Assembly (NCBI RefSeq): GCF_018977255.1
Contig: NW_024704742.1
Location: forward strand, 137,640,001-137,704,000
Direction: 5' to 3'
From: Callorhinchus milii
Taxonomy: Eukaryota
DNA length: 64,000 bases
The notes beneath the pieces are model-generated. The model had not been told where the DNA came from, did not search any database, and saw nothing but the letters and a program-made list of their open reading frames with translations. Both the position numbers and the translations under genes were made by a program. This document shows positions 113-63,418 of the stretch, piece after piece (position 1 is the stretch's first letter; each line of letters opens with the position of its first letter).

Positions 113-162
113 ATTCAAGACGTCTCCATCCTGAGGCCAAGAAAAGAAGGAGCTCTGTATAG
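113..162 (+). CDS. Terminal coding exon of upstream paralog (gene Z), short Tyr-free tail (D)[15 protein letters not shown]
   Basis: Acceptor ttctttttcttcactcatAG; near-identical to gene A last exon 18799-18848; window 1-900 aligns with about 18687-19380. Confidence 0.7.
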
Positions 163-832
163 TTCCCGCTCTCTCACCTGTGCCTGTCTCCAGTGGCCAT
201 GAAAGTGTCTCGTACAAGATCACAAGAGCTTGAAGTCAGGCAGAGCTTCTGATGATCGAGACCTTTTGGCCTATAAGATCTCATCCTTGCAGTAAGCGCC
301 AGCCTGCAGTCCTCCCATTATAGCATTGAGCTGCTTCGACGACGTTCACAGTCACCTCCTCTGTCCCCCCGGCTTGGCAACAGGCTACGCCACTATGAAG
401 CATTCCGAGACGCTGCCCCATGTGAAGGGCGCTGAATAAATGCACTGTTGCTGTTAGGTTGAAGGTTATGACCTCCAGCAGCCACTCATGTCAAAGCCTT
501 CCATGTTCTAAATAGCTGTGTTTGAAAAGATGACTTCTTTCCTCTGTTCCAATCGTTGCAGTGAGAATCCTGATCTCACCGTTCTTCTCACCCACTGTGA
601 AACGCTCAGTGTATTCAGGGGTTGTGCTCATCCCGTGCCTTCAACTTCACACATCTCATCAACTCCTCGCGGCTTCCTGGAATCTCATCCTTTCCAATGG
701 GTTGTTGGAACCTCCAACCTCCAACCTTGAAGAACATCGTTGATTCCAAGACATTGAATGGGACTCTCTCATGAACTCCTTTTGCTACTAAACCTGTGCT
801 CCTTAGTAAATATTCTGTTTTCCAAATGACTG

Positions 833-838
833 AATAAA
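833..838 (+). promoter_or_regulatory. Polyadenylation signal of gene Z
   Basis: AATAAA followed by GT-rich tract; conserved at 19313-19318 in gene A. Confidence 0.5.
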
Positions 839-2960: not shown

Positions 2961-2964
2961 TGCT

Positions 2965-3375: not shown

Positions 3376-3379
3376 CATA

Positions 3380-9547: not shown

Positions 9548-9599
9548 ATGATGCTGGGAGCTGTGCTCTGTACCCTGGTCCTGTCAGCCTCGGCCTTCC
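9548..9599 (+). CDS. Gene A exon 1, signal peptide [17 protein letters not shown]
   Basis: Hydrophobic 17-mer, phase-1 donor c|GTACGT. Confidence 0.85.
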
Positions 9600-12500
9600 G
9601 TACGTACTTTCCAATCAGAAACCTGACTGGCTTTAATTACTGCTTTACCTTTTACTGGAATAATTACAGTCATGTGATATCTCCTGCAAATAAGATTCCC
9701 GTCTCTAAACTGAACAGAACTGTGTTACTCACTGAGCCCCACAGTGTAAGTGTTTGCCTCACCCTTTGGAACTCCATCCCACAGTCCCTTCCCCTCACCC
9801 CTCTCTTGATGTCCTCCCGACATGAAAGGTGCTATACAATTTGTTGTTGAATCGGTGATCTTCCCATCCTGCGCAGAATACTGTCTGTGATGAGGTGAGC
9901 AGGATACGTCCCTCTGGGGACAAAGTGCACATCTCATTCCAGACACACAGACATTTCCAGATATAGGTGGAATTCTGAGTAGTTTGGTTTGAAGACTCTT
10001 CAGCGCAGTGATGAGTTTCCTCTGTTATCAGACACCCGGCTGATCGCAAACAAAGTGTCTGTGCCGGCGCTAGTTCTCACTGCAGCTCTGTATTCTACTG
10101 CAGTTTCTCACTCTTAAAATGATGGTATTTTTGTAGCATGAAAACAGCCCCTCCGCCCGTTCATTCCATTTTAAACAGTATTATTTGCTTCACCAGCTGC
10201 TCAGTCTTACCCTGTGTCTCGCTCACTCTCCCTCCCCCCAAAAAACATTTAATATTCCTCCTCTTCAAACATCTATCCAATTCCTTTCAAAAGACTTGAC
10301 TGTGGATTCATGTAGCTCAGTGGTTTGCACACTCACCTCAAAGGTGAGAAACCTGGGTTCGATTCCCAGCAGGCGAAAGGTTAGGCAAGTTTCCCTACTC
10401 CACAAGCTTCTGTTTATCTAGAAGTAAGTAAGAACCCGGTTGTTAGTCGATTGGCAGATCACTTTTCTGGGGGTATTAATTCCTTCAAAATAAATGATAT
10501 TAAATTGGTCACTCAATTCACGACTGTTTGTTGGTCACTGCTGTGGACTATTGGCTGCTGCATTTCTCCCACAAAATATACAGTCAATTCACTTGAGAGC
10601 ATATCCTGTGAAGCGCTTTGGGACGACTCAAAGACGTAATAAGGTGCTATATCAAATGCAAGGGTTACTTTATTATTATTGATGGACTTTGCCTCAACTC
10701 CGGTTTGTTACCTGTCTGCTTTTATGTTGTGTTCTGGTTCACATTACACCATGTGTGTCCTCACAGGGCTCAGTAAGAATGGCTGGACGATGGAGATCCC
10801 CGATACAGTGACCGGCAGTTTAGGGTCACCGGTCACCGTGTACTGCAAGTTCACTCACCCTCACCCCAGATACACAGGGAACATCACCATCATGTGGAAT
10901 GCAGGAGGGACTGGTCCTGTGTATATTAAATATACAAATTATAGGCCGGATTCACAGGGAAAGTACCAAAATGTCATTGATGTAAACGAGGGAGAGCGAT
11001 ATCGAGTGATTGGGGATCCGAGGAGGAACGACGCCACAATAGAGATAAACCAACTGAGGGGAGAGGACAATAATAAGCTGTTGTCCTGTCGTGTGGAGCT
11101 CCAGGGTGAGGACGGAAAGTTTGAAACTGGCCCCAAAACACGTCTGATTGTTACAGGTGAGGAACGATGGGAAGTGGGAATGAGACGTGACGTTCCTCAC
11201 TGGGGCCGGAGTCAGTGGGAAGTGTCCCGTCCCAGGACGGGCAATAGAGAGCCAGTGTTCCCTGTGATGGACGGTGTGTAGCAGGGAGCTGACAGGTGAC
11301 AGTGAGTGAGCGGCTGCAGGGAGGGAGGGCTGTGCTGTACACTGACCTGTCACTGAGCACCTGGAGGCTGAGGCGGCCTCACTGTTGGGTTGTCTATTTG
11401 CCGAGGCCCCTCACATGAGGACCTGGATTCAGCAGCTGGTGATCAGTAAGCCTGGGACGGCAATGGATCTCGAGAACATCAAGGTGGCTGGCAGGTCACA
11501 AACTGCCCTGTAAGGTTCTCCCACCACAAAGCCGGTGTAAAGCAGGGACTGGCTCCACAGTGACATACCAGGCCACAGGACGTCGGGCAGGAGTCAACCC
11601 TCTGTGGGGGTCTCTAGTCTGGTTCCTGAGCCAGGCGGTCGCAGTACTCCAGGGCACTGCTGATTTGGCATCAGCCTCATTGGCAGACCAGTCACTGGGC
11701 GCGACCATTCCCACTCAGCTCAATAACACCACAGATCTACACAAGCAGCAGGAAGCTTGCCACACAGTGCCGTCACTGGCCAACTGTGCTGTGGAGTCCT
11801 GTAGTGTAGTGGTTAGAGCACTCGCCTCACAAGCGAGAAGGCCTGAGTTCGATTCCCGGCAGTGTCAAACCTTGGGCAAGTTTCCTTACTCGACACGCCT
11901 CTGTTTACCTATCAGTAAGTAGGAACGTGGTTGTTAGTCGATTAGTGGATCACCTCGGGGGGTAATAATCTCTCCAAAAATAATTTTAAAAAGAATTTGG
12001 TTGCTCAATCACCGATATTTTGATGCAACACTGCTGGCGCAATTGGCTGCTGCATTTCTCCCACAAAATATGCAGTCAATTCACTTGAGAGCATATCCTG
12101 TGAAGCGCTTTCGGACGACTCAAAGACGTAATAAGGTGCTATATCAAATGCAAGGGTTACTTTATTATTATTGATGGACTTTGCCTCAACTCCGGTTTGT
12201 TACCTGTCTGCTTTTATGTTGTGTTCTGGTTCACATTACACCATGTGTGTCCTCACAGGGCTCAGTGGGAATGGCTGGACGATGGAGACCCCCGATACAG
12301 TGACCGGCAGGTTAGGGTCACCGGTCACCGTGTACTGCAAATTCACTCACCCTCACCCCAGATACACAGGGAACATCACCATCATATGGAATGCAGGAAG
12401 GACTGGTCCTGTGTATATTAAATATACAAATTATGGGCCGGATTCACAGGGAAAGTATCAAAATGTCATTGATGTAAATGAGGGAGAGCGATATCGAGTG

Positions 12501-15500
12501 ATTGGGGATCCGAGGAGGAACAACGCCACAATAGAGATAAACCAACTGAGGGGAGAGGACAATAATAAGCTGTTGTCCTGTCGTGTGGAGCTCCAGGGTG
12601 AGGACGGAAAGTTTGAAACTGGCCCCAAAACACGTCTGATTGTTACAGGTGAGGAACGATGGGAAGTGGGAATGAGATGTGACGTTCCTCACTGGGGCCG
12701 GAGTCAGTGGGAAGTGTCCCGTCCCAGGACGGGCAATAGAGAGCCAGTGGTCCCTGTGATGGACGGTGTGTAGCAGGGAGCTGACAGGTGACAGTGAGTG
12801 AGCGGCTGCAGGGAGGGAGGGCTGTGCTGTATACTGACCTGTCACTGAGCACCTGGAGGCTGAGGCGGCCTCACTGTTGGGTTGTCTATTTGCCGAGGCC
12901 CCTCACATGAGGACCAGCAGCTGGTGATCAGTAAGCCTGGGACGCGGCAATGGATCTCGAGAACATCAAGGTGGCTGGCAGGTCACAAACTGCCCTGTAA
13001 GGTTCTCCCACCACAAAAAAGCCGGTGTAAAGCAGGGACTGGCTCCACAGTGACATACCAGGCCACAGGACGTCGGGCAGGAGTCAACCCTCTGTGGGGT
13101 CTCCAGTCTGGTTCCTGAGCCAGGCGGTCGCAGTACTCCAGGGCACTGCTGATTTGGCATCAGCCTCATTGGCAGACCAGTCACTGGGCGCGACCATTCC
13201 CACTCAGCTCAATAACACCACAGATCTACACAAGCAGCAGGAAGCTTGCCACACAGTGCCGTCAATGGCCAACTGTGCTGTGGAGTCCTGTAGTGTAGTG
13301 GTTAGAGCACTCGCCTCACAAGCGAGAAGGCCTGAGTTCGATTCCCGGCAGTGTCAAACCTTGGGCAAGTTTCCTTACTCGACACGCCTCTGTTTACCTA
13401 TCAGTAAGTAGGAACGTGGTTGTTAGTCGATTAGTGGATCACCTCGGGGGGTAATAATCTCTCCAAAAATAATTTTAAAAAGAATTTGGTTGCTCAATCA
13501 CCGATATTTTGATGCAACACTGCTGGCGCAATTGGCTGCTGCATTTCTCCCACAAAATATGCAGTCAATTCACTTGAGAGCATATCCTGTGAAGCGCTTT
13601 CGGACGACTCAAAGACGTAATAAGGTGCTATATCAAATGCAAGGGTTACTTTATTATTATTGATGGACTTTGCCTCAACTCCGGTTTGTTACCTGTCTGC
13701 TTTTATGTTGTGTTCTGGTTCACATTACACCATGTGTGTCCTCACAGGGCTCAGTGGGAATGGCTGGACGATGGAGACCCCCGATACAGTGACCGGCAGG
13801 TTAGGGTCACCGGTCACCGTGTACTGCAAATTCACTCACCCTCACCCCAGATACACAGGGAACATCACCATCATATGGAATGCAGGAAGGACTGGTCCTG
13901 TGTATATTAAATATACAAATTATGGGCCGGATTCACAGGGAAAGTATCAAAATGTCATTGATGTAAATGAGGGAGAGCGATATCGAGTGATTGGGGATCC
14001 GAGGAGGAACAACGCCACAATAGAGATAAACCAACTGAGGGGAGAGGACAATAATAAGCTGTTGTCCTGTCGTGTGGAGCTCCAGGGTGAGGACGGAAAG
14101 TTTGAAACTGGCCCCAAAACACGTCTGATTGTTACAGGTGAGGAACGATGGGAAGTGGGAATGAGATGTGACGTTCCTCACTGGGGCCGGAGTCAGTGGG
14201 AAGTGTCCCGTCCCAGGACGGGCAATAGAGAGCCAGTGGTCCCTGTGATGGACGGTGTGTAGCAGGGAGCTGACAGGTGACAGTGAGTGAGCGGCTGCAG
14301 GGAGGGAGGGCTGTGCTGTACACTGACCTGTCACTGAGCACCTGGAGGCTGAGGCGGCCTCACTGTGGGGTTGTCTATTTGCCGAGGCCCCTCACATGAG
14401 GACCTGGATTCAGCAGCTGGTGATCAGTAAGCCTGGGACGCGGCAATGGATCTCGAGAACATCAAGGTGGCTGGCAGGTCACAAACTGCCCTGTAAGGTT
14501 CTCCCACCACAAAAAAGCCGGTGTAAAGCAGGGACTGGCTCCACAGTGACATACCAGGCCACAGGACGTCGGGCAGGAGTCAACCCTCTGTGGGGGTCTC
14601 TAGTCTGGTTCCTGAGCCAGGCGGTCGCAGTACTCCAGGGCACTGCTGATTTGGCATCAGCCTCATTGGCAGACCAGTCACTGGGCGCGACCATTCCCAC
14701 TCAGCTCAATAACACCACAGATCTACACAAGCAGCAGGAAGCTCGCCACACAGTGCCGTCACTGGCCAACTGTGCTGTGGAGTCCTGTAGTGTAGTGGTT
14801 AGAGCACTCGCCTCACAAGCGAGAGGGCTTGGGTTTGATTCCCGGCAGTGTCAAACCTTGGGCAAGTTTCCTTACTCGACACGCCTCTGTTTACCTATCA
14901 GTAAGTAGGAACGTGGTTGTTAGTCGATTTGTGGATCACCTCGGGGGGTAATAATCTCTCCAAAAATAATTTTAAAAAGAATTTGGTTGCTCAATCACCG
15001 ACATTTTGTTGCAACACTGCTGGCGCAATTGGCTGCTGCATTTTTCCCACAGTCAATTAACTTTGCAGTATATTCTGTAAAGCGTTTTGAGATGTCTCAA
15101 TAGCGTGATATCAAATGCAAGTTTTATTATTATTATTATTATTATGCTGTTTCCGCTGGTTGAACTCCAGCCTCACACACACCCACACAAGCCTTGCACT
15201 TGCCAACATGTGCATAATACTCTCTGAATTGGATACTCAGAGTGGATATATATGTAGAACTCTCTCTCTGGTTTAGATACTCTCAACAATGGTGACAGAT
15301 TTCTGTATGTATCAGGCAATTGGCTGCCCCAACACATGAGGAGGGGTTGTCTCCATGGATCTACACCATCTGAAATGGTTGTTCAACAACAACAATAACG
15401 TCCATTTATATAATGCCCCTCGTGCAGGGCAGCATCCCAGAGCCTTCATAACCATTCAGGGTAGTTCATCTCAGTAAACTGGCTGCAAAACAGTCACTAC

Positions 15501-18500: not shown

Positions 18501-18848
18501 TTAAACATGGTGTTGGGTTTCAATATTGTCTTTGACTGTGCCTATGGTTACCTCGCCCTTCAACCTTGCCACTATACAGAGCTCTGGGACGCTTTCCTGT
18601 GTGAATACAAGTTGTTGTTGTTGTTGGATTTACCCCATTTCTGTACCACCCTGGGTTTGTGGGCAAAACATCTCAAAGGCTGAGACGAGGTGGAATTTTG
18701 CGATTCTGTTGAGCCTTTGAGAACATGGGAACCCGTGACTCCCAATAACAGTGTTTGTTTGGCTGAAACATGATCTCATTCTTTTTCTTCACTGATAGAT
18801 TCAAGGCGTCTCCATCCTGAGGCCAAGAAAAGAAGGAGCTCTATATAG
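9548..18848 (+). CDS. SIGLEC15-like: Gene A: Siglec-15-like activating-type receptor (leader, V1a, V1b, V1c, V2, C2+TM with Lys, short tail); 684 aa if all exons used, 424 aa with one V1
   Basis: All introns GT-AG, all junctions phase 1, open frame; motifs [29 protein letters not shown] and TM Lys match Siglec-15 as recalled. Confidence 0.8.
10304..10680 (+). mobile_element. tRNA-derived SINE upstream of V1a
   Basis: A/B boxes, (tta)n tail; orthologous copies at about 24460-24812 (B) and 62340-62665 (C). Confidence 0.7.
10767..11156 (+). CDS. Gene A V1a exon, Siglec-type V-set with essential Arg (codon 11090-11092)
   Basis: tcctcacAG acceptor, g|GTGAGG donor, 390 bp phase 1-1, Cys/Trp/Cys framework. 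Confidence 0.9.
11793..12172 (+). mobile_element. Chimeric tRNA-Val-derived SINE at duplication junction 1
   Basis: 5' part matches the 14779-15145 SINE, 3' part matches the 10304-10680 SINE. Confidence 0.75.
12259..12648 (+). CDS. Gene A V1b exon (duplicate V-set)
   Basis: Intact splice sites and frame; 7 aa differ from V1a. Confidence 0.85.
13282..13661 (+). mobile_element. Chimeric SINE at duplication junction 2
   Basis: Same chimeric structure as 11793-12172. Confidence 0.75.
13748..14137 (+). CDS. Gene A V1c exon (duplicate V-set, same protein as V1b)
   Basis: Intact splice sites and frame. Confidence 0.85.
14779..15145 (+). mobile_element. tRNA-Val-derived SINE downstream of V1
   Basis: gtagtgtagtggttagagcactcgcctcacaagcg head; orthologs about 27336-27750 (B) and 60390-60727 (C). 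Confidence 0.75.
15718..16101 (+). CDS. Gene A V2 exon, second V-set (RYFCHVH, no Arg after Cys)
   Basis: cctgtctcAG acceptor, g|GTAAGA donor, 384 bp; LPC, VLW, DTGRYFC. Confidence 0.9.
17049..17168. repeat. 71-bp intronic minisatellite, about 2 units
   Basis: gagctccagtgggggagtgagcaccagcacagacacgatg; about 3 units at 29672-29866, about 1.5 at 58145-58256. Confidence 0.8.
17217..17615 (+). CDS. Gene A C2-set, stalk and TM exon; [27 protein letters not shown] with Lys at 17564-17566
   Basis: cctgaAG acceptor shared with B and C; [12 protein letters not shown]; donor g|GTTTGT (weaker) keeps phase 1. Confidence 0.82.
18799..18848 (+). CDS. Gene A terminal exon (D)[15 protein letters not shown]
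   Basis: Pyrimidine-rich acceptor, phase-1 compatible, paralog at 113-162, AATAAA at 19313. Confidence 0.72.
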
Positions 18849-23699: not shown

Positions 23700-23751
23700 A
23701 TGATGCTGGGAGCTGTGCTCTGTACCCTGGTCCTGTCAGCCTCTGCCTTCC
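23700..23751 (+). CDS. Gene B signal-peptide exon
   Basis: Same peptide as A; c|GTACGT donor. Confidence 0.85.
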
Positions 23752-36553: not shown

Positions 36554-36631
<78 letters not shown>

Positions 36632-49188: not shown

Positions 49189-52100
49189 CTGGAAGAGAAA
49201 CAAAATGGTGTCAGGACATGTCCCACCACTTGCTGAGAGCTCTGATATAACGTGTGACCCACGTTAAAGTCTATAAGAACTCTCACCTTTACTATAACGA
49301 CTCTAATACCAAATGTCTCAAAGCAAATCGCTGTCAAGTGTAGTGACTGTGTATTTTATCAGCAAACCTGGCGGCTAATTTGAATTCAACAATGTCCACA
49401 TACAGCCAAGAAATGGGGGATCAATTTTATTTGGAGAATTGTTGGCCCGGACACCAGGAGAGAGAAATTCCCTTCCCTTTTCCAACAGCACATTGCATTC
49501 CAGACACAGGGAAATTTCCATGTGGAGGTGACATATATATGTGGAATTCTCATTCTGGTTTGGATACTCTTGAGAAGGTGATGTTGGTTGACCCAAAAAA
49601 CCTCAATAGATACAGACGGGATCTTGGTTTAACATCGCAATTAAAGGACAGCACTTCTGACAATGTAGCGCTCCTCCCAGTACTGCACTGGAGCATCAGC
49701 CTGGACTGTGAGCTCGAGGGCCCTGATTTAGGGGCTCGAATCCCCAACCTCCTGACCCAGAGCCAGAGTGCGAGCAGCGAGGCGACTGGATACACAATAA
49801 ACCAGAAAAGGCTGACAATACTCACTGTCATCAGAGGCTCTGATGGTGGAATTTGCGTACACTTGGGAAGGAGAGAGAGACAATTATTAGTAAATAATTT
49901 CAATATTGATAATATTTCCATCAGAAATGGGAATCAACATCACAAAGAAAATATGACACTGGTTATTAAACAGAGTATACATAGAAATCCGGAGAGGGGG
50001 GTTCAATGTCTAAAGCTCAGTCCCCAAAGCTGGGACAGGATTCAATTGGTGCTACTCTAATGCAAGTGATTTGGACTTGATACTACTCTAATATCAGGGC
50101 CTGGGGATTGGTGAGCACCAACCACAGGGTTAGGACTTAGGTGAATGTAGCAGCCAATTTGCACCAAGCTCCATAACCCCATATAATAATAATAATCCTT
50201 GCATTTGATATAGCGCTTTTCACGTCGGGAGGACGTCCCAAAGCGCTTCACAGAACACACTGTAAAGTGAATTGACTGTATATTTGTGGGCGAACGCGGC
50301 AGCCAATTGCGCACAGCAATGTCCCACAAACAGTCGTAGATTGAAAATGACCATTATTATTATTGTTTTTTTTTGGAGGGATTATTATTAGGCTCTGTGT
50401 GGAGTAAGGAAACTTGCCCAAGGTTTTGCCCTCTGCCTGGAATTGAACTCAGGTCTCTCACTTGCAAAGCGAGTGCTCTAACCACTGAGCTACAGGACTC
50501 CACACTCATCCCCACACTCCATTGCCTTGCTCCCTCCTACATCCCTGACCTGCTAAGCCCCTATCAACCTGTCTGCTCCCTCCATTCAGCAGGCTCCGGC
50601 CTACTTCATGCTCCCACCTTACCTACCCTACAATCGGCGGCCAGGCTTTCAGCCTCTCTGACCCACCCTTTGGAACTCCATCGCACAATCCCTTAGCCTC
50701 CCTTGCCTCCTCAATGCCCTCCTTTACGTCCATGCCTTCAGCCGTCCTCCTACCTCTCTGCCCTCCCTCACCCCAACCCTGCTCCCCTCTCGCTCGGGTC
50801 CTGATCCACGGCTATTCAGCACCTTGGGACATCCTCCCGACGTGAAAGGTGCTTTACAAATGTAATTTCTTGTTGTTTCTTACCTGAATCTGTTTGCCGG
50901 GCCGGTGCTGGGGTAACCACACTGTAGATCACAGCAGCTGCGTCTGTCAGATACATAACAGTCAGCTCCTTCTCCAGGTCTCTGCAGCTTCCCCTTTGCC
51001 ACATTCTACCTCGTCCTGTCCCCATTTTCCTGATACACCAGCCACTTCCACTCCCTCAAGATACAGGTGAGTGCTATTGAAAGCACCGGGCTCAAATCTA
51101 ATTAATGGTCCACTGGCAGATCTGCCTCGACAACATCAAAACAGCTCCATCCTCACCTCCACTAATTCATCCTTCTACTCCAAGATAATCTTGGAGGCAA
51201 GCACAACCCAAGGCTCCTCTTCTCCATGGGTTGAGGGTTGTCCCCTCCCCATCTCCGCAACATTGCTCAACTCTGCCACGGCCTCAGCCCTCAGGCTGCC
51301 GAAATCCTCATTCACACATTAATGACATTAGACTCGACTATCGCAACTCCCTGCTTGTCGGACTTGCCAAATTTTCCCTCCATAAGCTGCAGATTATTCA
51401 GGCCCTTTGACTGTGAGGCTCTGAAAGGCTCTCCCTTTAGCCCCACTCCCCTTTTCCCATTGGCTTTCAGATTTTTCTTTTCTAAATATTATTGGTGACT
51501 TGGCAGGTGTATTTTGCCAACTCCCAGATCCTGGGAATAGCTGTGAGATGAGGGACCAATTTATCCAGGGATTGTCATCCAGGACATTGGAAGGAACTCC
51601 CTTCCTTTTTCTGATAGTGTCACGGGATCTTTAACATCCCGATGGGCACAAGGATTCTTTCCACTCAGCTCCTGTTGGGTGACAGACATATGGCACTCTC
51701 TGGGAGGATGGTCCCAGCTGGACAAGCAGCAGGAAGCTTATTATCTAATGCTTTCAATGGCAAGCTATGTGGTTTCAGCTGGTTATACTCCAGCAGTTAT
51801 CTCGATGACTTGGTTCTCGCTACTGTGAACTGAAAACTTTCTGAAATGAGGTAAGCAGGATGAGTCTCTCCGTGGAGACAGACAGAGTGAGCCATTCCAT
51901 ATATGGAAATTTCCACGTGTAGGTGATTTACATGGGTGGAATTCTCAGTCTGGTTTGGATGCTCTGAAGCACAGTGATGGGTTTCTCTGTGTGAAGACAC
52001 CCAGAGCCAGAGGTGAGATGGTCACTGACTGAGCTCGGCTGAGACCCAGTGACCGGTTATTGAAAGCACGGGGTCAAAATTGTGGCATCGCTAATTGAGA

Positions 52101-55100
52101 CAGAACAGTTACCGTCTCCTGCAGGCGGCTGAGGTCGGACCATTTCGTTGCTAACACCCACATCCATTTGATGACTGAAAAAAAGAGAAAACGTTTTATA
52201 TTGTACATTTTATAGAGGTTAGAAGATAAAACCTTATATATAATAATTTGATACAGTGTCTTTCACATCAGGAGGATGTCTTATAGCACTTCACAGTGTA
52301 GGATTCAGTAAATAATGTTTTATTCTATCCTAAAGAAGGAATACAAGACTACGATTTAAACAACTTTGAACGTACAATAATAGCTGAATATTTTGGGGTG
52401 AATCTCTCAGCCTGGACTGACTGGGACTATCAGATTGTCCCCTCTACCTAAGCTCGCTGACACCCCCACCGTCTCGGTGTGCGCATTTTGGCTACCGCCT
52501 CCACCCAAGCTTCTCCATAATGCTCCTAACCCTGTCCTCTGCCCTCCACTATTCCCCCTCGATCCTCCTGTCTCACCGGCCTCCCCGACTCCTATTCCTG
52601 CTCGACCGTCCCACAGCCTCCCTCTGCTCCAGTCTGCGAAACCTCCATCGGCCTACCGCAGAAGATGTTGCTTCCTGTCCAAGAGCAGCCTCTCTGACTG
52701 CCCTGTTCTCCATTCTCGCCACAAGGCTCACCGGTCCCTGACCATGGGGACCAACATCTCCTCCCTGATCCCATCCCCACTGTACGTGTTAGTCATCAAC
52801 CACCCTTTGAGCACCTTACCATTTATCACCACTCCAACCATGCCCTCAAAATTCTCCTAATCTAGTGCCCCCAAGCCCTTCCCCAATTTCATCACTGACA
52901 TCTCTACCCTCCTATCTTCTCTGCCCCTCTGCTCCGAACTCCTCCTCATCCTAGGTGGCTTCAACTTTCATTTCACTCCCTCCTGCTCATCTGAACTCCT
53001 TCCCCTCTGGGCTTCCTTCCACCATGACATATCCTCCTCGATCACTCTTCTCCACAGCTCCCTCTCCTCTACTCTCGATTCCACTCTCTTCGCAAACCAT
53101 CTCCTATCCATATAAGTCAGCATGGTACACCAGCCACCACCGCTCCCTTAAAGCACAGTTGCGTGCCGCTGAGCACACATGGCTTAAATCAAACTTAACG
53201 ATCCATCGGGACATCTGGCTGGACCATATCAAATCCTACTGCTCCGCCCTCGCCTCCGCTAAATCGTTGTTCTACTCCTAGACAATCTTGGAGGCTAAGG
53301 ACAACCCCAGGCTCCCCTTCTCCATCATGAACTACTCCTCCACCACCATCTCACGCCTTGCTCATCCTCAGCTTAAATGCCAACCTCTAGGCGATGCTAC
53401 AATTCCTGGAATCCAAAGTCAAGGGAATCTGCTCAGTTGCCTATGCCATTCCATTTGCTACCCCCTTGAGATCAACATCGCCCACCCCGGCCCTTACGTA
53501 TCCCCCCCTCCACACCTTCAAACCTGTCTCCCCCTCCTCTCTCATCACCATTATAACCAGCATGAAACCGACTACCTTCTCCCTCGACCCCACTCCTACC
53601 CCTCTCCTTACCTCCCAGCTCCATCTCCTTGCCCCTCTACTCATTGACATCATGAATCTCTCCCTGTCCTCTGATAGTGTTCCCACATCATTAAAAACCG
53701 CCGTCATCACTCCAATCCTTAACAAACTCTCCCTGGACCCATCTCTAATCCCAAATTACCGCCCCGTTCCCAAATATCCTTTCCTCTCCAAGGTCCTGGA
53801 ACGAGTTGCTTCTCAGCCTCACTCCTTCCTCTCCTCCACTGCCTTCATGAACCCCTCCAATGGGGTTTCCCTGCTGCCCACAGCACAGAAACAGCCCTGG
53901 CCAAAGTGACAAATGACATTCTGTCCATCTGCGAACAGGGCTTCCTTTGCTTCCTTATTGACATCTCTCACAGTTGACCATTCTATCCTCATCCCACTTC
54001 AATCTTCACAGCTCTGTCCTTCACTGGTTCAGATCGTACCTCTCACACCACCACCACTTTATATCCACAAACGGTTCCTCCTCTAGCCCCCGCACGGTCT
54101 CGTGCGGTGTTCCTCAGGGCTCTGTCCTTGGTCCCCTCCTCTTCAATATCTATATGCTCCCTCTTGGTGACATCATCCGGAGACATGGGGTCAACTTTCA
54201 CATGAATGCGGATGATGCCCAACTCTACCTTTCTACCCTTAACTCCAGGACCCACTGCTGTCCTGACAGAATGACTGTCGGATATCAAGTCCTGGATGAG
54301 AGTTAACTTTCTTCAGTTGAACGTCAAAAAGACTGAGACTTTCTTGATTCACTCCCGTCAGCGCCTCCTCACCTCAACCAAAAACATCACCATCCATGGT
54401 TTCATACTCCAGTCACACTCCAGCTTGCTAAGCCAGTCCGAAACCTTGGCATCTTGTTTGATCCTCAACTACCCTTTCTACCCCACATTTGTACTATGAC
54501 CCGTTCTGCCTTCCCCACCCCTGTAACATCGTCCGGCTCTGCCACTGTTTTACACCGTAGGCCGCAGAAACCCTCATACATGCTTTATTACATCGAGTCT
54601 CGACTATGCAAACTCCTTGCTTGTCGGCCTTCCCAACTCTTCCCTCCATACGCTGCAGATCATCCAGAACTCTGCAGCCAACATCCTCTCCCACACTAGG
54701 CTCTGCGACCCTATCAACCCCATCTCGCCCGACTCCACTGGCTTCCTATCCCACAGAGCATACAGTTCAAGATCCTGGTTCTCACCTTCATGGACTTGCT
54801 CCATGGACTTGCTCCCCCCTACTTCTGTAACCTACCATTATGCTCGTCCCCACCGCTTAGCTGGCTCAAGCCTGCTTCATGTCCCCTGCCTCGTTCGCCT
54901 CACTATTGACGGTTGAGCCTTCTGCCACTCTGTCCGCACGCTCTGGAACTCCTTCCCTGCTTCATCCCGTGCCCTACACACTCCCCGACCTCGACCCCTA
55001 GCTTGGGTCCAAAACTCTTCTGTCCAGAGCCTTGGGACGTTCTCCCAACATGAAAGGCGCTTTATAGATGTAATTTTGTTGTTTTTGTTGGGTGATACCG

Positions 55101-58100
55101 AACTGGAAACCGTACAATAATATCTGGATACCTCTTGAGTGATATCGAACTGTACAACAATAATTGGATTCCTTTTGATGGATATCTAATTGGATTAAAA
55201 AGAACAGATTAAAATGGACATTAAATTGGACATTGCTCCTCTATGTCTCTCACAGCATTTGTTTTGATCAATTTAAATTGTTGTGAACTACGGTATACAT
55301 GGATATGTAAGCATAATTGGATACATTCTTTTAATTATTTATAACCATTATTAATCTGAATTGTGATTAATTGTACAACAACAGCGTCTCTCATGTCAGG
55401 GATCTTCACCAATCACTTCACGGAAAAGCAGCACGATGCTAACCCAGGTGGGGTGGGGGAGGGGAAGGTCCAACAGGAAGGTCTTCAGGCGCGACCTGAA
55501 GATGGAAAAGGAAGGGGCAATGTGGTGGGATAGAGGAAGAGTGTTCCAGAGTGGGGCTTAGGTAAATAGTGTCTCTTTGGGCTTCGCTGGCTACAAAGTT
55601 AGATGCTTGGCAACGGAATGTAATGGTCTCTAGTTCGGTTCGTTAGACAGGAAGGTCTGCAGTATTCCAGGCACTGCTGGTGATAGCAGGACTTGGAAGG
55701 GAGAGCAGTCACTGGGGGCAGGGAATCCTCCCACTCAGCTCCTGCTAACCCTGCAAGTCAAAGCCCTAACAGTGAGGGTGGTCCAAGCTGGAGAGGGAAG
55801 CAGGAAGCTTTCCAGATACAGGGCTCAACAGCAATTAGGAACTTGGAAGTGGATGTAACAGTGAAGGGATTAGAAAGACGCTCTCACCTCTCTGAACACT
55901 GACAGCAATGTCCGACACCATCAGCTGAAGAAATTAAAGAAAGATGAGAGAATGATTTAGATGGTTTGCTGATGACCTTTGTTAGTGCACATGTTATTCC
56001 AGTTAAAGACTTGTGCAAACTCTCCTCTTCCTGTTGTGTGGTGTAACCATGGCTACTGAAGCAGGAAGCCAGGCTCATGTCACCATCCAAAGAAGCCATT
56101 AGTTCCACTGTGTCTGTGCTGGTGCTCTCTCCCCCACTGGAGCTCTCTACCCTAATCCCATCCCTGCTCTCTCTCCCCATGGCGTCTGTGCTGGTGCTCG
56201 CGCCCCCACTGGAGCTCTCTACCCTAATCCCATTCCCTGCTCTCTCTCCCCATGGCGTCTGTGCTGGTGCTCTCTACCCGACTGGAGCTCTCTACCCTAA
56301 TCCCATCCCTGCTCTCTCTCCCCATGGCGTCTGTGCTGGTACTCGCGCCCCCACTGGAGCTCTCTACCCTAATCCCATTCCCTGCTCTCTCTCCCCATGG
56401 CGTCTGTGCTGGTGCTCTCTACCCGACTGGAGCTCTCTACCCTAATCCCATTCCCTGCTCTCTCTCCCCATGGCGTCTGTGCTGGTGCTCTCTACCCGAC
56501 TGGAGCTCTCTACCCTAATCCCATCCCTGCTCTCTCTCCCCATGGCGTCTGTGCTGGTACTCGCGCCCCCACAGGAGCTCTCTACCCTAATCCCATTCCT
56601 GCTCTCTCTCCCCATGGCGTCTGTGCTGGTGCTCTCTCCCCCACTGGAGCTCTCTACCCTAATCCCATCCCTGCTCTCTCTCCCCATGGCGTCTGTGCTG
56701 GTGCTCGTGCCCCCACTGGAGCTCTCTACCCAAATCCCATCCCTGCTCTCTCTCCCCATGGCGTCTGTGCTGGTGCTCTCTCCCCCACTGGAGCTCTCTA
56801 CCCAAATCCCATCCCTGCTCTCTCTCCCCATGGCGTCTGTGCTGGTGCTCTCTCCCCCACTGGAGCTCTCTACCCTAATCCCATCCCTCCTCTCTCTCCC
56901 CATGGCGTCTGTGCTGGTGAAGGAGAGATTGTTGGCCCCATTAATTGTTATTGGGCACTTTGTGTGAGGAATCAGGTTTCCATGTGTCTCTCTCTGCGTC
57001 TCTAACTGTATGTGGGGATTTATCTCCTAAGAATCAATGGATATTGCGACACCCTGTCTGTGCTGGCGCTCAAGTGAATAAGGTAATAGGAGGATATCTG
57101 ATGATTAGGTAACAGCAGAGGGAATATCTCGTCTGTGGTTATCAGGATCTGGGGCGACCCGTCCTGTGTCTGAGCAGATACCCAGTGTGTGGATACACAG
57201 CGTTACACAGCAATTACAATTGACAGTGAATGTTGTTATGGAGGTAACCGCGGCAGATAATCTGCTGAGCCAGAGGTGAGAGTGCGAGCGGCTGAGACAG
57301 ACTCACTTGGAATAAACATTACCTTTGTCTGTAAACACCTACCTCTCTTTACCCGCCAGATAATGATGGCAGTCACCAGAACGAGCAGCACCACAATGGA
57401 TACCACGATATATACAGTCTGACAACCATCACTGTGTCTGTCCCCATCACTGTGTCTGTCCCCATTGCTCTGTCTGTCCCCATCGTTCTGTCTGTCCCCA
57501 TCACTCTGTCTGTCCCCATCACAGTGTCTGTCCCCATCGCTCTGTCTGTCCCCATCGCTCTGTCTGTCCCCATCGCTCTGTCTGTCCCCATCGCTCTGTC
57601 TGTCCCCATCACTCTGTCTGTCCCCATCACAGTGTCTGTCCCCATCGCTCTGTCTGTCCCCATCGCTCTGTCTGTCCCCATCGCTCTGTCTGTCCCCATC
57701 GCTCTGTCTGTCCCCATCACTGTGTCTGTCCCCATCGCTCTGTCTGTCCCCATCGCTCTGTCTGTTCCCATCGCTCTGTCTGTCCCCATCACTCTGTCTG
57801 TCCCCATCACACTGTGATCCAGGTGCGAGGATGTCTCGGGCGTCTCTGCCCTGTGTGTTCTCAGCTACACAGCGGTAAATTCCCCTCAGCCTCGGGCCCC
57901 GGATCTCCCCCACGGTTTGATGTTTGTCCACTACGTGTGTGACTGGCGTGTGGTTGGTGTTAATGGGCAGCGTGTTATTCTCGGGGTTGATCCATGTGAT
58001 GTTGGCCGGTGGTTCCCCCTCAGCCGTGCACACAATGTCAACTCCGACTCCATCACCGGCCACGAGGGACAGACTCAGGATTACAGCCGGAGCTTCAGGT

Positions 58101-61100
58101 ATAAAGAAACACAGAGTTATTCAAACTAAACAACTGTCCCCATCGTGTCTGTGCTGGTGCTCACTCCCCCACTGGAGCTCTCTACTCTAACCCCATTCCC
58201 TGCTCTCTCCTATCTTATCTGTGCTGGTGCTCGCTCCCCCACTGGAGCTCTCTCGTCTAAGTCATTCTCTTTTCTGGTAGATTGTCATGATGTTCACAAT
58301 GTTCCCTTTCAAACACTTTCAAAATTCCAATATTCAAGTCTATTCGGGTCCCAGCGCCTTGGGACTTCAACATTCACTTCACCCCCTCCTTCTCTACCTC
58401 TGCTGACTTCTCCTCGGTCATCTCCTCCCTCACCCTTCCCTCCACATTCACTCCGCCAACCATGGAGGATACACCTCCGCGATCACACCCTCGACTTGCA
58501 GATCTTTCGGGGGCTCACCATTTCAGATCTCACCATTACCAACAAAGCCATCTGGGACCATCATTTCATCTCCCTTAACTCCTCAATCCCTCTCCCAACT
58601 GCCATCCAACCAACCTCAATATCCTATTGCCTCTGCAAAAAAAAACTCCCTCTCCCTCTTTGCCCGTCTACTCACAGACATCATAAACCTCCCCCTGTCC
58701 ACTTGTACCATTCCCACCCCTTTAAAAACTCTCGTCATCACTTCTCTCCTTCAAAAAACCTGATCTGAACCCATTCCTGTTCTCAAACTACCGCCACATC
58801 TCCAACCTCTCTTTACTCTCCAAGGTCCTACAAAGAGACCCAGCTTTGCCCTTCCTCTCCCGCCATTCCCTTCACAAACCCCTCCAATCGTGTTTCCATG
58901 TCACCCACAGCACAGAAACAGCCCTGGTCAAAGTGACAAATGATATTCTGTTTATCTGCAACCAGGACTGCCTCGACCTCATTCTTCTTGACCTCTCTGC
59001 TGCCTTTGGTACTTTTGACCATTCTATCCTCATCCACCACCTCACCTCTCACAACTTCACGGTTCTGTCCTTGAATGGTTCATATCGTACCTCTCACACC
59101 GCCTCCATTTTATCTCCACAAACAGTTTCTCCTCTAGACCCCGCACCATCTTGTGCGTCATTCCTCAGGGCTCTGTCCTCGGTCCCCTCCTCTTCAATAT
59201 CTATATGCTCCCTCTTGGTGACCTCATCCGCAGACATGAAGTCAACTTCCACATGTATGCGGATGACACCCAACTGTACCTCTCTGACGAATAGGGTAAG
59301 GAATGAGACAAACCTCGTCTGTAACATTGCGTCAGTGATGACCTGTTCATTCACCCCTTTCCGTGTCCCACAGAGACAAGAGATCTCTTACCAACAACCT
59401 GCAGCCGTGACATGTTCTGTGTCACCTGGTCCTGTTGGTACGTTTCCTTTATAAACATGACGTGTACGTGACAGAAATACCGTCCGGTGTCGTTTAACTC
59501 CAGGCCCCTGATCTTCAGGGAAGCGTCTCCATCTCCCACATTCCTGACCAGCTTGTAGCGATTTCCTTCATTCACTGTCTCTGACTCCCTGGAGTTGGTG
59601 TGGGCGGTGAGGCCAAGAGTGTAATTAAACACCAGCTGCCCATGTGGCCTCCCTCTCCTCCAAAGCACTGTGACTGTGGCACGATTCTGGTATGTGTTGG
59701 GGATGGTGAAGGAGCAGGGCAGTGTGGCATCACCTCCCTTGGTACCAGTCACTGACCGGAGCTTCTCTTCATGACCTGAGACAGGAACAGGATTGGAATA
59801 GTGCAGAGCAGTCAGTGTGACAGAGTACATGTTACACACTGTGAAATCCTGGATATGTTACCTGCTCTTCATGGCACCATCTCCCTCAGGCCTGTGCTCC
59901 TCACTCACCCTCTATGAGCCTGTGGGCAGCACAATGTCTCACAGACAAAATCCTGGATTTTTAAAGCACCGATAATATGATTGCTGGCAAATGAAGTGAC
60001 TGTTTTGCAGCCAGTTTTCTCAGATGATGGACCCCCAATGCTTATGAAGGCTCTGGGATGCTACCCCGCACGAGGTGCGCTATATAAATGCACGTTATTG
60101 TTGTTGTCGACAACCAATTCAGATGGAGGATTGTTGGTGTAAACCCAAGGAGATAACCCTTCCTCATGTTTTGGGGCAGTCGGTTTCCTGATACATACAG
60201 AAATCTGTCACCATTGTTAAGAGGACCTAAACCAGAGAGAGTGTACCACCTATATATCCACTCTGAGTATGTAATTCAGAGAGTATTATGCACACATTGG
60301 CAAGTGCAAGGCTTGGGGACCCCAGTGTATGTGTTTGGGGCAATTTGGAGTTCAAACAGCGAAAGCTGCATCATAATAATACATACATTTGATATCACAT
60401 TGTTCAGACGTCTCAAAGCGCTTCACAGAATATTCTGTAAAGTGAATTGACTGTATAATTTTGTAGGAGTAATCGATTATGCCAGCATTGTTTCTTCAAA
60501 CAGTCGTGGTTTGAGCAACAAAATTATTTCTAAAATTATTTTTGGAGAGATTATTATGCCCCAGGGTCATCCACCAATCGACGGACAACCATGTTCCTAC
60601 TTACTGCTAGGTAAAGAAAGGAGGGCAGAGTAAAGAAACTTGCTCAAGGTTTCTCACTGCCCAGGAATCGAACCCAAGCCCTCTCGCTTGTGAGGCGAGT
60701 GCTCTAACCACTACACTACAGGACTCCACAGCACAGTTGGCCAGTGACGGCACTGTGTGGCAAGCTTCCTGCTGCTTGTGTAGATCTGTGGTGTTATTGA
60801 GCTGAGTGGGAATGGTCGCGCCCAGTGACTGGTCTGCCAATGAGGCTGATGCCAAATCAGCAGTGCCCTGGAGTACTGCGACCGCCTGGAACCAGACTAG
60901 AGACCCCCACAGAGGGTTGACTCCTGCCCGACGTCCTGTGGCCTGGTATGTCACTGTGGAGCCAGTCCCTGCTTTACACCGGCTTTTTTGTGGTGGGAGA
61001 ATCTTACAGGGCAGTTTGTGACCTGCCAGCCACCTTGATGTTCTCGAGATCCATTGCCGCGTCCCAGGCTTACTGATCACCAGCTGCTGAATCCAGGTCC

Positions 61101-63418
61101 TCATGTGAGGGGCCTCGGCAAATAGACAACCCCACAGTGAGGCCGCCTCAGCCTCCAGGTGCTCAGTGACAGGTCAGTGTACAGCACAGCCCTCCCTCCC
61201 TGCAGCCGCTCACTCACTGTCACCTGTCAGCTCCCTGCTACACACCGTCCATCACAGGGACCACTGGCTCTCTATTGCCCGTCCTGGGACGGGACACTTC
61301 CCACTGACTCCGGCCCCAGTGAGGAACGTCACGTCTCATTCCCACTTCCCATCGTTCCTCACCTGTAACAATCAGACGTGTTCTGGGCCCAGTTTGAAAC
61401 ATTCCATCCTCACCCTGGAGCTCCACACGACAGGACCACAGCTTATTATTGTCCTCTCCCCTCAGTTGGTTTATCTTTATTGTGGCGTCGTTGTTTCTCG
61501 GGTTCCCAATCACTCGGTGTCGCTCTCCCTCGTTTACATCAATGACATTTTGATACTTTCCCTGTGAATCCGGCCTATAATTTGTATAATTAAAATTCAC
61601 AGGACCAGTCCAGCCTTCCTTCCACGTGATGGTGATGTTCCCTGTGTATCTGGGGTGAGGGTGAGTGAACTTGCAGTACACGGTGACTCGTGACCCTAAC
61701 CTGCCGGTCACTGTATTGGGGGTCTCCATCGTCCAGTTATTCTTACTGAGCCCTGTGAGGACACACATGGTGTAATGTGAACCATAATAATATTAATACT
61801 TGCATTTAATGTAGCGCTTTTCACGTCTTCTCGACGTCTCAAAGCGCTTCACAGAATGGGCTGTAAAGTGAATTGACCGTATATTCATGGGCGAAACGTT
61901 ATTTGTGGGCGAAAAATAATATAAAAGCAAACAGGTAACACTGAGCTTGTACAATTGCTTGGTTAGGTCACAGCTGAGAAAGTAATGTGGATAGTATTGG
62001 GATCCGCACTGTAAGAAGGTGATGGAAAAGGTGCAATTTAGATTTACTGTGATGTCCCCAGGGATTTAGGGGTTTGAGTTACTAAAAGAGATTTGAGAGG
62101 ATTTGGCTTTTTTTATGAAGCTGAGAAGGTTAGGAGTGACCTGATAGAGGTCACAAAAAGTCAAAGAGTCACAACAATAGATTTTTCCTCTCATCAGCCG
62201 GTCAGCCACAAGAGGAATAAATCTAAAAACATCATTAAAAAAAAGGAAATTAGGAGGAGATTAGAAAGATTCTCTCTACACAGAGACGATGGGATTGTGG
62301 AATCAGCTGCCACAAACGGAGTTGAGGCAAAGTCTGTCAATAATAATAATAATCCTTGCATTTGATATAGCACCTTATCACGTCTTCGAGACGTCTCAAA
62401 GCACTTCACAGAATATACTGTAAAGTGAATTGACTGCATATTTTGTTGGCAAAACTCAGCAGCCTATTGTGCCCAGCAGTGATTCACAAACTGTCGGGGA
62501 TTGAGTGACCAATTACTTATTACTCACGGAAAAGTGATCTGCCAATCAACTAACAAGCGGGTTCCTACTTACTGCGAGATAAACAGAGCGGTGTGGAGCA
62601 AGGCAACTTGCACAACCTTTCACACTATCCGGAGTGCTCAAACCACTGAGCTACAGGAACCCACAGGCAAGTCTACCAAAGGCAATTGGATTGATGTTTG
62701 AAGAGGAGAAATATTAAACGGTTTGGGGGTGGGACATAGAGTGATCGGGACAAAAGGTGTGACTGAGCAGCTTGTGAAAAATATAACACTTTTTAAAATG
62801 GAATGAACGGGCGGATGGGCTAGTTTGTGCTATAAGAATACCGTAATTTTAACTGTCAGAAACTGGATGAGAATAAAGAGCTGCAGTGAGAACTAGCGCC
62901 AGCACAGACACTTTGTTTGCGGTCAGCCGGGTGTCTGATAACAGAGGAAACTCATCACTGCGCTGAAGAGTCTTCAAACCAAACTACTCAGAATTCCACC
63001 TATATCTGGAAATGTCTGTGTGTCTGGAATGAGATGTGCACTTTGTCCCCAGAGGGACGTATCCTGCTCACCTCATCACAGACAGTATTCTGCGCAGGAT
63101 GGGAAGATCACCGATTCAACAACAAATTGTATAGCACCTTTCATGTCGGGAGGACATCAAGAGAGGGGTGAGGGGAAGGGACTGTGGGATGGAGTTCCAA
63201 AGGGTGAGGCAAACACTTACACTGTGGGGCTCAGTGAGTAACACAGTTCTGTTCAGTTTAGAGACGGGAATCTTATTTGCAGGAGATATCACATGACTGT
63301 AATTATTCCAGTAAAAGGTAAAGCAGTAATTAAAGCCAGTCAGGTTTCTGATTGGAAAGTACGTACGGAAGGCAGAGGCTGACAGGACCAGGGTACAGAG
63401 CACAGCTCCCAGCATCAT
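49136..63418 (-). CDS. SIGLEC15-like: Gene C: Siglec-15-like inhibitory-type receptor with long repeat stalk, 607 aa, 9 coding exons
   Basis: Exons sum to 1824 nt, phases consistent, paralogous to B in inverted orientation. Confidence 0.82.
49826..49861 (-). CDS. Gene C cytoplasmic exon 4 ([12 protein letters not shown])
   Basis: 36 bp; in-frame 3-nt indel versus B. Confidence 0.8.
50884..50943 (-). CDS. Gene C cytoplasmic exon 3, ITIM VIYSVV
   Basis: 60 bp, splice sites conserved. Confidence 0.8.
52113..52174 (-). CDS. Gene C cytoplasmic exon 2 ([21 protein letters not shown])
   Basis: 62 bp, phase 2-1. Confidence 0.75.
52430..55090 (+). mobile_element. Long degenerate L2 ORF2 (APE to RT to 3' tail)
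   Basis: [38 protein letters not shown]. Confidence 0.85.
55888..55924 (-). CDS. Gene C cytoplasmic exon 1 ([12 protein letters not shown])
   Basis: 37 bp, phase 1-2. Confidence 0.75.
56112..56919. repeat. 72-bp intronic minisatellite, 11 full units plus a partial
   Basis: gtctgtgctggt recurs every 72-73 bp. Confidence 0.93.
57343..58092 (-). CDS. Gene C C2, 21x DGDRQS stalk and uncharged TM exon
   Basis: 750 bp open frame, phase 1-1. Confidence 0.85.
57431..57808 (-). repeat. Coding 18-bp VNTR (gatggggacagacagagc) x21
   Basis: 378 bp; exon is 130 codons longer than B's (126 repeat plus 4 indel). Confidence 0.93.
58400..59285 (+). mobile_element. L2 fragments in gene C intron 3
   Basis: [18 protein letters not shown]; MYADDTQL. 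Confidence 0.8.
59392..59775 (-). CDS. Gene C V2 exon
   Basis: 384 bp, phase 1-1. Confidence 0.9.
61363..61752 (-). CDS. Gene C V1 exon (Arg codon 61427-61429)
   Basis: 390 bp, WSCRVE. Confidence 0.9.
63367..63418 (-). CDS. Gene C signal-peptide exon
   Basis: Same peptide as A and B; c|GTACGT donor. Confidence 0.85.

Follow-up and report, generated by a model that had tools for sequence, protein, structure and literature searches.

Siglec-15-type receptor genes with Lys-transmembrane or ITIM-tailed ends in a chimaera: a candidate paired receptor cluster

The question raised by this locus is whether neighbouring receptor genes with alike ectodomains and opposite signalling ends form a paired activating and inhibitory system, and from which known receptor such a system would be built. 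The locus lies in a 64,000-nucleotide stretch of the genome of the holocephalan Callorhinchus milii, the elephant shark (GCA_018977255.1, MU249832.1:137,640,001-137,704,000, plus strand). The chromosome measures 139 Mb, and this whole stretch, called the window below, lies about 1.5 Mb from its end. A preliminary description had proposed at least four paralogs of a Siglec-15-like receptor here, probably from a cartilaginous fish. The source species is indeed a cartilaginous fish, and the proteins assembled from the window find their best matches in C. milii. The four paralogs were recovered as three complete genes (A, B and C) together with one (Z) of which only the final exon is present, the features starting at position 113, the first base of the Z tail exon, and ending at 63418, the ATG of gene C on the minus strand. 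We consider that the window is probably the middle of a gene cluster, arranged in tandem and inverted in part, whose separate genes encode type-I membrane receptors belonging to the Siglec-15 family. The paired design proposed in the preliminary description also stood, since neighbouring genes with highly similar ectodomains end either in a transmembrane (TM) segment with a Lys and a short tail or in a tail with immunoreceptor tyrosine-based inhibitory motifs (ITIMs).

Gene models were derived from a listing of open reading frames (ORFs), self-BLAST, reading of splice sites and comparison with RefSeq. In A, B and C every intron is bounded by AG/GT sites, the immunoglobulin (Ig) exons are phase 1-1 and there are no internal stops; by Pfam the domains are two V-set (V1 and V2) and one Ig/I-set (C2). 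Gene A (plus strand, 9548-18848; 424 amino acids with one V1 exon used) has the exon order leader, V1, V2, a single exon for C2, a short stalk and the TM helix, and then the last exon. Gene B (plus strand, 23700-39569) encodes 478 amino acids and gene C (minus strand, 63418-49136) 607. A, Z and B are on the plus strand and C on the minus strand, with B and C lying tail to tail and an inversion point between them. The features of the window are as follows.

113..162, plus strand: last coding exon of Z, 16 amino acids then stop; 96% match to the A tail exon and 3' region
9548..9599, plus strand: A leader exon, 17 amino acids, phase 1, GT donor; peptide the same in B and C
10767..11156, plus strand: A V1 exon copy 1, V-set, CRVEL Arg present; AG/GT, 390 nt, phase 1-1; in XP_042192088.1
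12259..12648, plus strand: A V1 exon copy 2, coding sequence the same as copy 3; repeat units 98.6% identical
13748..14137, plus strand: A V1 exon copy 3, used in the 424-amino-acid model; best PDB match the human Siglec-15 V domain, E = 2.2e-14
15718..16101, plus strand: A V2 exon, second V-set, Arg position His (RYFCHVHV)
17217..17615, plus strand: A exon for C2, stalk and TM with central Lys, which aligns with the bony-vertebrate Siglec-15 TM Lys
18799..18848, plus strand: A cytoplasmic tail exon, 16 amino acids then stop, without Tyr
23700..23751, plus strand: B leader exon
25263..25652, plus strand: B V1 exon, CRVEL
28336..28719, plus strand: B V2 exon
29910..30269, plus strand: B exon for C2 and neutral TM
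31410..31446, plus strand: B tail exon 1, 11 amino acids
36944..37005, plus strand: B tail exon 2, SHQMDLDVNNDMVQPQPPAGD
38194..38253, plus strand: B tail exon 3, ITIM VIYSVV
38852..38890, plus strand: B tail exon 4, VYANSARARASDD, YxN motif; in RefSeq XP_042192088.1
39517..39569, plus strand: B last coding exon, ITIM VIYAVV and stop
63367..63418, minus strand: C leader exon
61363..61752, minus strand: C V1 exon, CRVEL
59392..59775, minus strand: C V2 exon
57343..58092, minus strand: C exon for C2, expanded stalk and neutral TM
57426..57808, minus strand: C stalk minisatellite, 18 nt x 21, coding SDGDRQ
55888..55924, minus strand: C tail exon 1
52113..52174, minus strand: C tail exon 2
50884..50943, minus strand: C tail exon 3, ITIM VIYSVV
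49826..49861, minus strand: C tail exon 4, 12 amino acids
49136..49188, minus strand: C last coding exon, ITIM VIYAVV and stop

Two kinds of signalling end were observed, and the features that had been proposed for them were borne out. A has a central TM Lys and a last exon of 16 amino acids free of Tyr. Z is of the activating type by its tail exon, which ends RRSSV, its body lying upstream of the window; positions 1-442 (the Z tail exon with 3' sequence) are 96% identical to 18687-19128 of A. In B and C the TM is neutral and the tail is encoded by five exons; a tail length of about 87 amino acids had been given, and it measures exactly 87 in B and 86 in C. Both tails carry the ITIM VIYSVV, the YxN motif VYANS and the ITIM VIYAVV, in that order, and the VYANS exon (39 nt in B, 36 nt in C) is bounded by AG/GT in both genes. 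An AlphaFold 2 (AF2) model of a close paralog (P0001; P-numbers are our labels of compared proteins) contained three beta-sandwich domains and a TM helix at residues 369-400 with the Lys near its middle, at a predicted local distance difference test (pLDDT) score of 80.9.

The leader peptide is identical in A, B and C (17/17 residues, 100%). Amino-acid identity among the three is 84-90% for V1, 91-94% for V2 and 91-96% for C2, so that the term "near-identical" used earlier for the ectodomains is overstated for V1. When A was compared with B and C the values were 84-88% (V1), 92-94% (V2) and 92-96% (C2), but only 20% for the TM, and the TM segments of A and B are thus unrelated. At the DNA level the units are 87-97% identical by self-BLAST, introns and leader flank included. 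The similarity of A to B and C ends inside the C2-TM exon, at an 18-nt stalk repeat, GATGGGGACAGACAGAGC (coding SDGDRQ), of which A has about 1.5 copies, B no intact copy and C about 21.

The homology search and a tree of V domains both upheld membership in the Siglec-15 family. The best PDB match of V1 was human Siglec-15 (7zoz), followed by CD33 (E = 2.8e-8), and the best match of V2 was again the Siglec-15 V domain (E = 1.6e-8). An exhaustive phmmer search of 1.84 billion representatives returned 121 proteins at E <= 1e-3. The higher-scoring matches whose names were looked up were mostly called Siglec-15 or "siglec 15, like" by their source, and the Siglec-15-named matches came from lungfish, coelacanth, sturgeon, bowfin, gar, frog, turtle, birds, sharks and eel; the low-scoring matches with looked-up names included CD22-like, MAG-like, pIgR-like, siglec-9-, -10- and -14-like, lamprey and other proteins. 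A maximum likelihood (ML) tree was built from 72 V domains with CD33-related, CD22-like, MAG-like and pIgR-like outgroups, the CD33-related member being a rodent protein "uncharacterized" at its source and assigned by its sequence. The Siglec-15 group separated from the outgroups with support of 94/92, and the outgroup part held the CD33-related, siglec-9-, -10- and -14-like sequences together with shark pIgR-like proteins. Within the Siglec-15 group an elasmobranch V-C2 clade was basal (100/99), its white-shark member being ITIM-tailed, and bony-vertebrate Siglec-15 (92/93) was sister to a chondrichthyan clade of V1 and V2 domains (89/79). V1 and V2 were sisters inside that clade (91/75), which suggests that V2 arose by domain duplication in the cartilaginous-fish lineage before the chimaera-elasmobranch split.

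The TM Lys of A falls in a column common to Siglec-15 of salmon, lungfish, coelacanth, frog, bird and an inferred mammal (an assignment made from its V domain, which all but matches the human PDB sequence) and to the shark and ray activating forms. B and C have a neutral TM in place of this Lys. The signatures FTHPH and GNPRxND are common to the window receptors and vertebrate SIGLEC15, and C2 is colinear with the C2 of teleost Siglec-15. Taken together, these sequence comparisons support placing the receptors in the Siglec-15 group and not in the CD33-related, CD22/MAG-like or pIgR-like groups. The notion of a Siglec-15 scaffold stood with respect to family membership, but the architecture here is V1-V2-C2 and not V-C2, with a V2 that lacks the sialic-acid Arg.

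Two further searches were set aside as family evidence. A PDB search with C2 and TM gave generic I-set matches (receptor tyrosine phosphatases, contactins), with the Siglec-15 C2 at a non-diagnostic E = 1.4e-3, and Foldseek with the whole three-Ig AF2 model gave generic multi-Ig matches (titin, IgLON, Dscam), which are uninformative for family. The basal elasmobranch lineage is a second, Siglec-15-like one with a plain V-C2 architecture (P0161/P0271 from white shark and basking shark; P0198 from manta). The white-shark and basking-shark proteins, the two lamniform members, bear the NCBI name "siglec-15" and have a Lys where the TM meets its outer edge; an ITIM, LDYSEV, is present in the white-shark one.

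The same exon set was found in at least six further copies directly outside the window, as mapped by tblastn with exon types and from the loci of current RefSeq proteins. Siglec-15 is accordingly not single-copy here, and the cluster comprises at least 10 genes over about 245 kb in which activating and inhibitory types mostly alternate. The plus-strand order is LOC103188801 (inhibitory, 137.565 Mb), then, after a gap of 52 kb in the map, Z (activating), A (activating) and B (inhibitory). The minus-strand order is C (inhibitory), G4 (activating), G3 (inhibitory), G2 (activating), G1 (inhibitory) and a gene annotated "siglec-15 X1" (activating), reaching 137.808 Mb. No neighbour genes of non-Ig type were found within the 10-kb flanks of the cluster loci. 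The DNA identity of 87-97% across exons and introns and the recurrence of the exon set at least six times outside the window argue that the cluster is not a chance arrangement. An identification of Z with LOC103174418 was rejected, since the RefSeq gene of that name is encoded by the minus strand and located beyond the opposite side of the window.

RefSeq divides this region differently, a point absent from the preliminary description. The protein XP_042192088.1 (LOC103188797 X1; window 9548-39569) corresponds letter for letter to window exons, but it consists of the A leader, all three A V1 exons and A V2 joined exactly to the C2, TM and ITIM tail of B. Likewise LOC103174418 spans 48 kb (L002 10001-58461; L002, L003 and L004 are fetched C. 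milii loci outside the window) and joins the 5' exons of G3 to the Lys-TM end of G4, while its isoform X2 starts at the leader of G2. Such models would be expected if A and B, and like neighbour pairs, were one long transcription unit in which alternative sets of 3' exons gave Lys-TM or ITIM isoforms; splicing, in place of gene duplication, would then be what makes the pair. We regard this as improbable, because an identical ATG leader exon of its own is present in every unit, along with a homologous 5' flank (87-93% over more than 1 kb around the leader) and a full exon set. The fused models also skip intact exons (the leader, V1 and V2 of B; the C2/TM and tail of A), and in elasmobranchs the activating and inhibitory forms are annotated as separate proteins. 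Fused predictions of near-identical tandem paralogs are a familiar weakness of automatic annotation, and RefSeq LOC103188797 and LOC103174418 are fusions of adjacent paralogs.

Returning to separate genes, the ectodomains of the two signalling types have been homogenised in C. milii. In the ML tree the C. milii V1 and V2 domains of both types cluster by species (99/99 and 100/99), and the elasmobranch activating V1 domains form a clade of their own across sharks and rays (96/74) in which the Arg is lost. A single clade of all activating V1 domains was rejected by the approximately unbiased (AU) test (p-AU 1e-5 and 1.4e-4), although it has to be admitted that the groups were chosen after the tree was seen. 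Identity to A is uneven along the Lys-TM gene "siglec-15 X1", at 34-36% in V1, 65-67% in V2 and 89-94% in C2, and C2 is 89-96% identical in all copies, this divergent one included. Mosaic blocks also cross the signalling types: KGDWTGPAHFNY is present in both B and G2, and a 13-amino-acid block is common to the V2 of C and G2. The species clustering, the AU rejection, the uneven identity and the mosaic blocks together indicate repeated gene conversion or unequal crossing-over of ectodomain exons, and the end of similarity at the 18-nt stalk minisatellite inside the C2-TM exon points to one putative exchange boundary there.

The signalling modules themselves are found more widely, and their histories disagree with those of the ectodomains: elasmobranchs share both the TM-Lys module and the inhibitory tail. 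TM-Lys, short-tailed V1-V2-C2 proteins were observed in basking shark, horn shark, cow shark, sawfish and devil ray, with a TM-Lys segment, NFIIGMLCLIPLVKFLLLLITGIILF, plainly homologous to the TM of A. Neutral-TM, long-tailed counterparts were observed in little skate, cow shark, horn shark, sawfish and stingray. Among the long tails, those of skate and sharks contain ITIMs and share with B and C a terminal (V/I)(I/T)YA.V motif; the sawfish and stingray tails are without a canonical ITIM. In bony vertebrates an eel "siglec15, like" and a salamander "siglec-12-like" protein fall inside the Siglec-15 group and have ITIM tails in which a YAN motif is followed by ITIMs. The presence of both modules in sharks and rays, and of ITIM-tailed relatives in bony vertebrates, indicates that the activating and inhibitory modules are ancient, and they may date to the jawed-vertebrate ancestor. 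A lineage-specific expansion, as proposed in the preliminary description, is thus retained for the tandem multiplication and the homogenised ectodomains, which appear to be specific to C. milii among the compared sequences, but not for the activating/inhibitory split.

The VYANS exon (B 38852-38890; C 49826-49861) resembles TVYENC of the cow-shark inhibitory tail and also the motif (S/N)YEN(V/L/F), which lungfish, bird and inferred mammalian Siglec-15 carry in their cytoplasmic tails. These likenesses hint that the YxN motif may be an old feature of the Siglec-15 family tail.

A broader history can be offered tentatively, as a possibility that we rate below even. The Siglec-15 lineage may already have been an activating/inhibitory system in the jawed-vertebrate ancestor, with TM-Lys and YAN-plus-ITIM modules; mammalian SIGLEC15 would then be the lone activating survivor, and the chimaera would, time and again, have re-coupled the modules to a single lectin ectodomain, evolving and homogenised, through recombination at the coding stalk minisatellite. 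If this ancestral two-module account is true, the cluster would parallel the arms-race loci of primates, Siglec-5/14 and Siglec-11/16, independently of them and at a much greater age.

The likely ligand was considered from the residues listed in the human Siglec-15 structure paper (PMC10264397), mapped by the alignment of V1 to 7zoz. V1 keeps the equivalents of W44, the C64-C142 disulfide, R143 and E155, with Phe at Y154. The V1 domains of A (all three copies), B and C read SCRVEL where human Siglec-15 has FCRVEF, so that the strand-F Arg is kept, and G3 also keeps it. V2 has His at the sialic-acid Arg position (CHVHV). The elasmobranch inhibitory forms mostly keep the Arg (CRV), with the exception of the stingray form. 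Where nine V1 copies differ, they do so mostly in the C-C' region and the G strand, the ligand face of Siglecs. From these residues, sialic-acid sensing by A, B and C may be predicted.

A number of observations weigh against this reading of a paired, sialic-acid-sensing cluster. Gene models A, B and C are predicted from genomic sequence, and the C2/TM-Lys end of A is absent from the recovered RefSeq models because RefSeq joins the A 5' exons to the B 3' exons. A C. milii DAP12-type adaptor was not found in one search with human TYROBP/DAP12 (the query matching human entries at 99-100%), in which only mammals were present in the best 120 matches listed, and the literature looked through on DAP12 in this species gave nothing of use. 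Pairwise ratios of nonsynonymous to synonymous change (dN/dS) were about 0.75 for V1 and about 2.1 for V2, values from few, non-independent pairs that are suggestive and carry no formal test. V1 lacks the C95-C104 (C'-C'') disulfide, both positions being Tyr, as well as the Y87 equivalent, and its C-C' loop is two residues shorter than in human Siglec-15. The V1 Arg is replaced by Cys (SCCVEL) in three neighbours, namely G2 and G4 (activating) and LOC103188801 (inhibitory), and zebrafish Siglec-15 reportedly binds the tested glycans weakly (PMC7226832).

The missing disulfide and Y87 equivalent, the Cys replacements and the zebrafish result, together with the V2 that lacks the Arg and the replacement of the Arg by Leu (CLV) in shark and ray activating forms and by Trp in C. 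milii "siglec-15 X1", are what would be expected if the family were Siglec-15-derived and paired but no longer read sialic acid, the V1 ligand being a protein or other structure as in receptors of the PILR/CD300 type. We think this rather unlikely. In A, B, C and G3 the Arg is kept, as are the Trp, Phe/Tyr and Glu positions through which human Siglec-15 contacts Neu5Ac; Siglec families typically include members that have lost the Arg, and the variation among copies is focused on the C-C' and G strands. This alternative touches the ligand and not the paired design. The SCCVEL V1 exons lie at L002 19224-19610 and 53382-53768 and at L004 11075-11461.

For the paired, sialic-acid-sensing family that we favour, the following mechanism is proposed. 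Each gene encodes a signal peptide, a lectin-type V1 with the sialic-acid Arg kept, a duplicated V-set (V2) without the Arg, C2, a stalk and a TM, and the like ectodomains are joined to one or the other of two ancient, non-homologous 3' modules. The module with a central-Lys TM and a short Tyr-free tail would, by analogy with Siglec-15, pair with a DAP12-type adaptor bearing an Asp and an ITAM (immunoreceptor tyrosine-based activation motif), and so activate. The module with a neutral helix and an ITIM-YxN-ITIM tail of about 87 amino acids would recruit SHP-type phosphatases and inhibit. Gene conversion or unequal crossing-over would keep the ectodomains of both kinds alike within the species, so that the activating and the inhibitory receptors would share their ligands or have similar ones, as classical paired receptors do, and these ligands may be sialylated structures. 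The selective reason may be that activating copies counter pathogens that exploit the inhibitory copies. These putative functions lean on the behaviour of Siglec-15, Siglec-14, Siglec-16 and ITIM receptors (PMC7226832, PMC4042635, PMC5701461).

Gene A has three tandem V1 exons, which the preliminary description had not included. All three are intact and phase 1-1, RefSeq isoform X1 uses all of them, and the protein of A may thus have as many as three V1 domains. By BLAST the identity of the repeat units is 98.0-98.6%, so that they are not exact copies, with 13-17 substitutions and indels between units, and each has a tRNA-Val-like head of a short interspersed nuclear element (SINE) in the following intron. 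This repeat, and the long stalk repeat of C, would be suspect if some copies were unexpressed pseudogenes or errors of assembly in a repeat-rich region. The region is indeed rich in SINE and long interspersed nuclear element (LINE) fragments and minisatellites, L002, L003 and L004 contain short N runs, and nearby there are orphan leader exons and a C2 fragment interrupted by a stop codon. We nevertheless judge this explanation very improbable. The exons of A, B and C are all open with splice sites intact, the window contains no N letters, the differences between the V1 units are such that no simple assembly duplication is indicated, and extra V-domain copies are also present in skate, cow shark, manta and lungfish relatives. 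The C2 fragment, which has an in-frame stop, and the orphan leaders (L004 1012-1176; L004 9252-9296; L002 28219-28266) are debris of further duplications of the cluster.

In the lungfish Protopterus annectens one Siglec-15 combines two V domains with a TM Lys, and a 1128-amino-acid relative contains seven tandem Siglec-15-type V domains (P0147, P0150). V-domain multiplication thus recurs in the Siglec-15 family outside cartilaginous fish.

Several repeats were recorded in the window. The tRNA-Val(CAC)-like sequences, probably SINE heads, are located at 11795-11867, 13284-13356, 14781-14853 and 27336-27408 (plus strand), one in the intron that follows each A or B V1 exon, and are part of a 1.49-kb repeat unit; other tRNA-like matches are scattered at 914, 19394 and 50428. 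The intron after the TM exon of gene C contains a non-coding minisatellite (72 nt x 11, 56112-56919), and related 71-nt copies are found at 29668-29867, just upstream of the C2 exon of gene B. Between Z and A there is a GC-rich 14/27-nt array of about 50 copies (4437-5114). Reverse-transcriptase-like ORF fragments with YADDTQL-type motifs (1699-2619, 7658-8350, 21602-21925, 53394-54306 and others) occupy the intergenic and intronic space alongside a repeat of about 210 bp in many copies.

Descriptions of paired Siglecs have come from the CD33-related branch, which evolves rapidly. Siglec-15 is regarded as a conserved, activating Siglec and is a current target in immunotherapy and osteoporosis (PMC6941304, PMC10264397). 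If our reading is true, receptor pairing as a solution originated, or was retained, in the Siglec branch that is oldest and near the base of the jawed vertebrates, and the V1 variants (Arg kept or lost, hypervariable C-C' and G strands) would offer a natural series for the original Siglec-15 recognition. A known design would be extended to a new lineage with no principle overturned, which is of interest to comparative immunology and to the history of Siglec-15; the RefSeq models in the cluster would be flagged as fused paralogs needing curation. Paired Siglecs with gene conversion and Siglec-15 itself are already known, and the sequences are public under automatic names. A literature search found no description of Siglec-15-type paired receptors in cartilaginous fish, and the genes are not annotated as a paired cluster, in agreement with the preliminary description, in which no earlier account was known.

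Four known systems invite comparison. Vertebrate SIGLEC15 (human Q6ZMC9; PDB 7ZOZ; teleost siglec15) is like the window receptors in having the closest solved V-set, the CRVE Arg of V1, a colinear C2 and, in gene A, the TM Lys at the aligned position followed by a short tail. The window receptors differ from it in the extra V2, in up to three V1 exons in A, in the missing C95-C104 disulfide and in the shorter C-C' loop. Vertebrate SIGLEC15 is single-copy, whereas the C. milii family is multi-copy and half of it has a neutral TM and ITIM tails in place of the Lys.

The teleost "siglec15, like" and salamander "siglec-12-like" proteins resemble B and C in lying inside the Siglec-15 group, in a YAN motif followed by one or more ITIMs ending xYAxV/I and, where scorable (the eel "siglec15, like"), in a neutral TM. 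They have V-C2 or other architectures, and they are not strictly "paired", since in a given species their V domains stand well apart from those of the activating SIGLEC15. The skate MDIRs (modular domain immune-type receptors) are, like the present family, a multigene set of activating and inhibitory Ig receptors with variable domain number in a cartilaginous fish (PMC3031540), but they are CD300/TREM/pIgR-like; they are set apart by their description, and shark pIgR-like proteins fall in the outgroup of the V tree.

The primate Siglec-5/14 and Siglec-11/16 loci (PMC4042635, PMC5701461) share with the C. milii cluster adjacent genes, ectodomains kept alike by gene conversion, an ITIM partner beside a charged-TM DAP12 partner, and loss of the essential Arg in some members. 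They belong, however, to the CD33-related lineage, an outgroup here, and to another vertebrate class, and each is one pair, whereas C. milii has at least 10 genes and its putative exchange boundary lies at a coding minisatellite.

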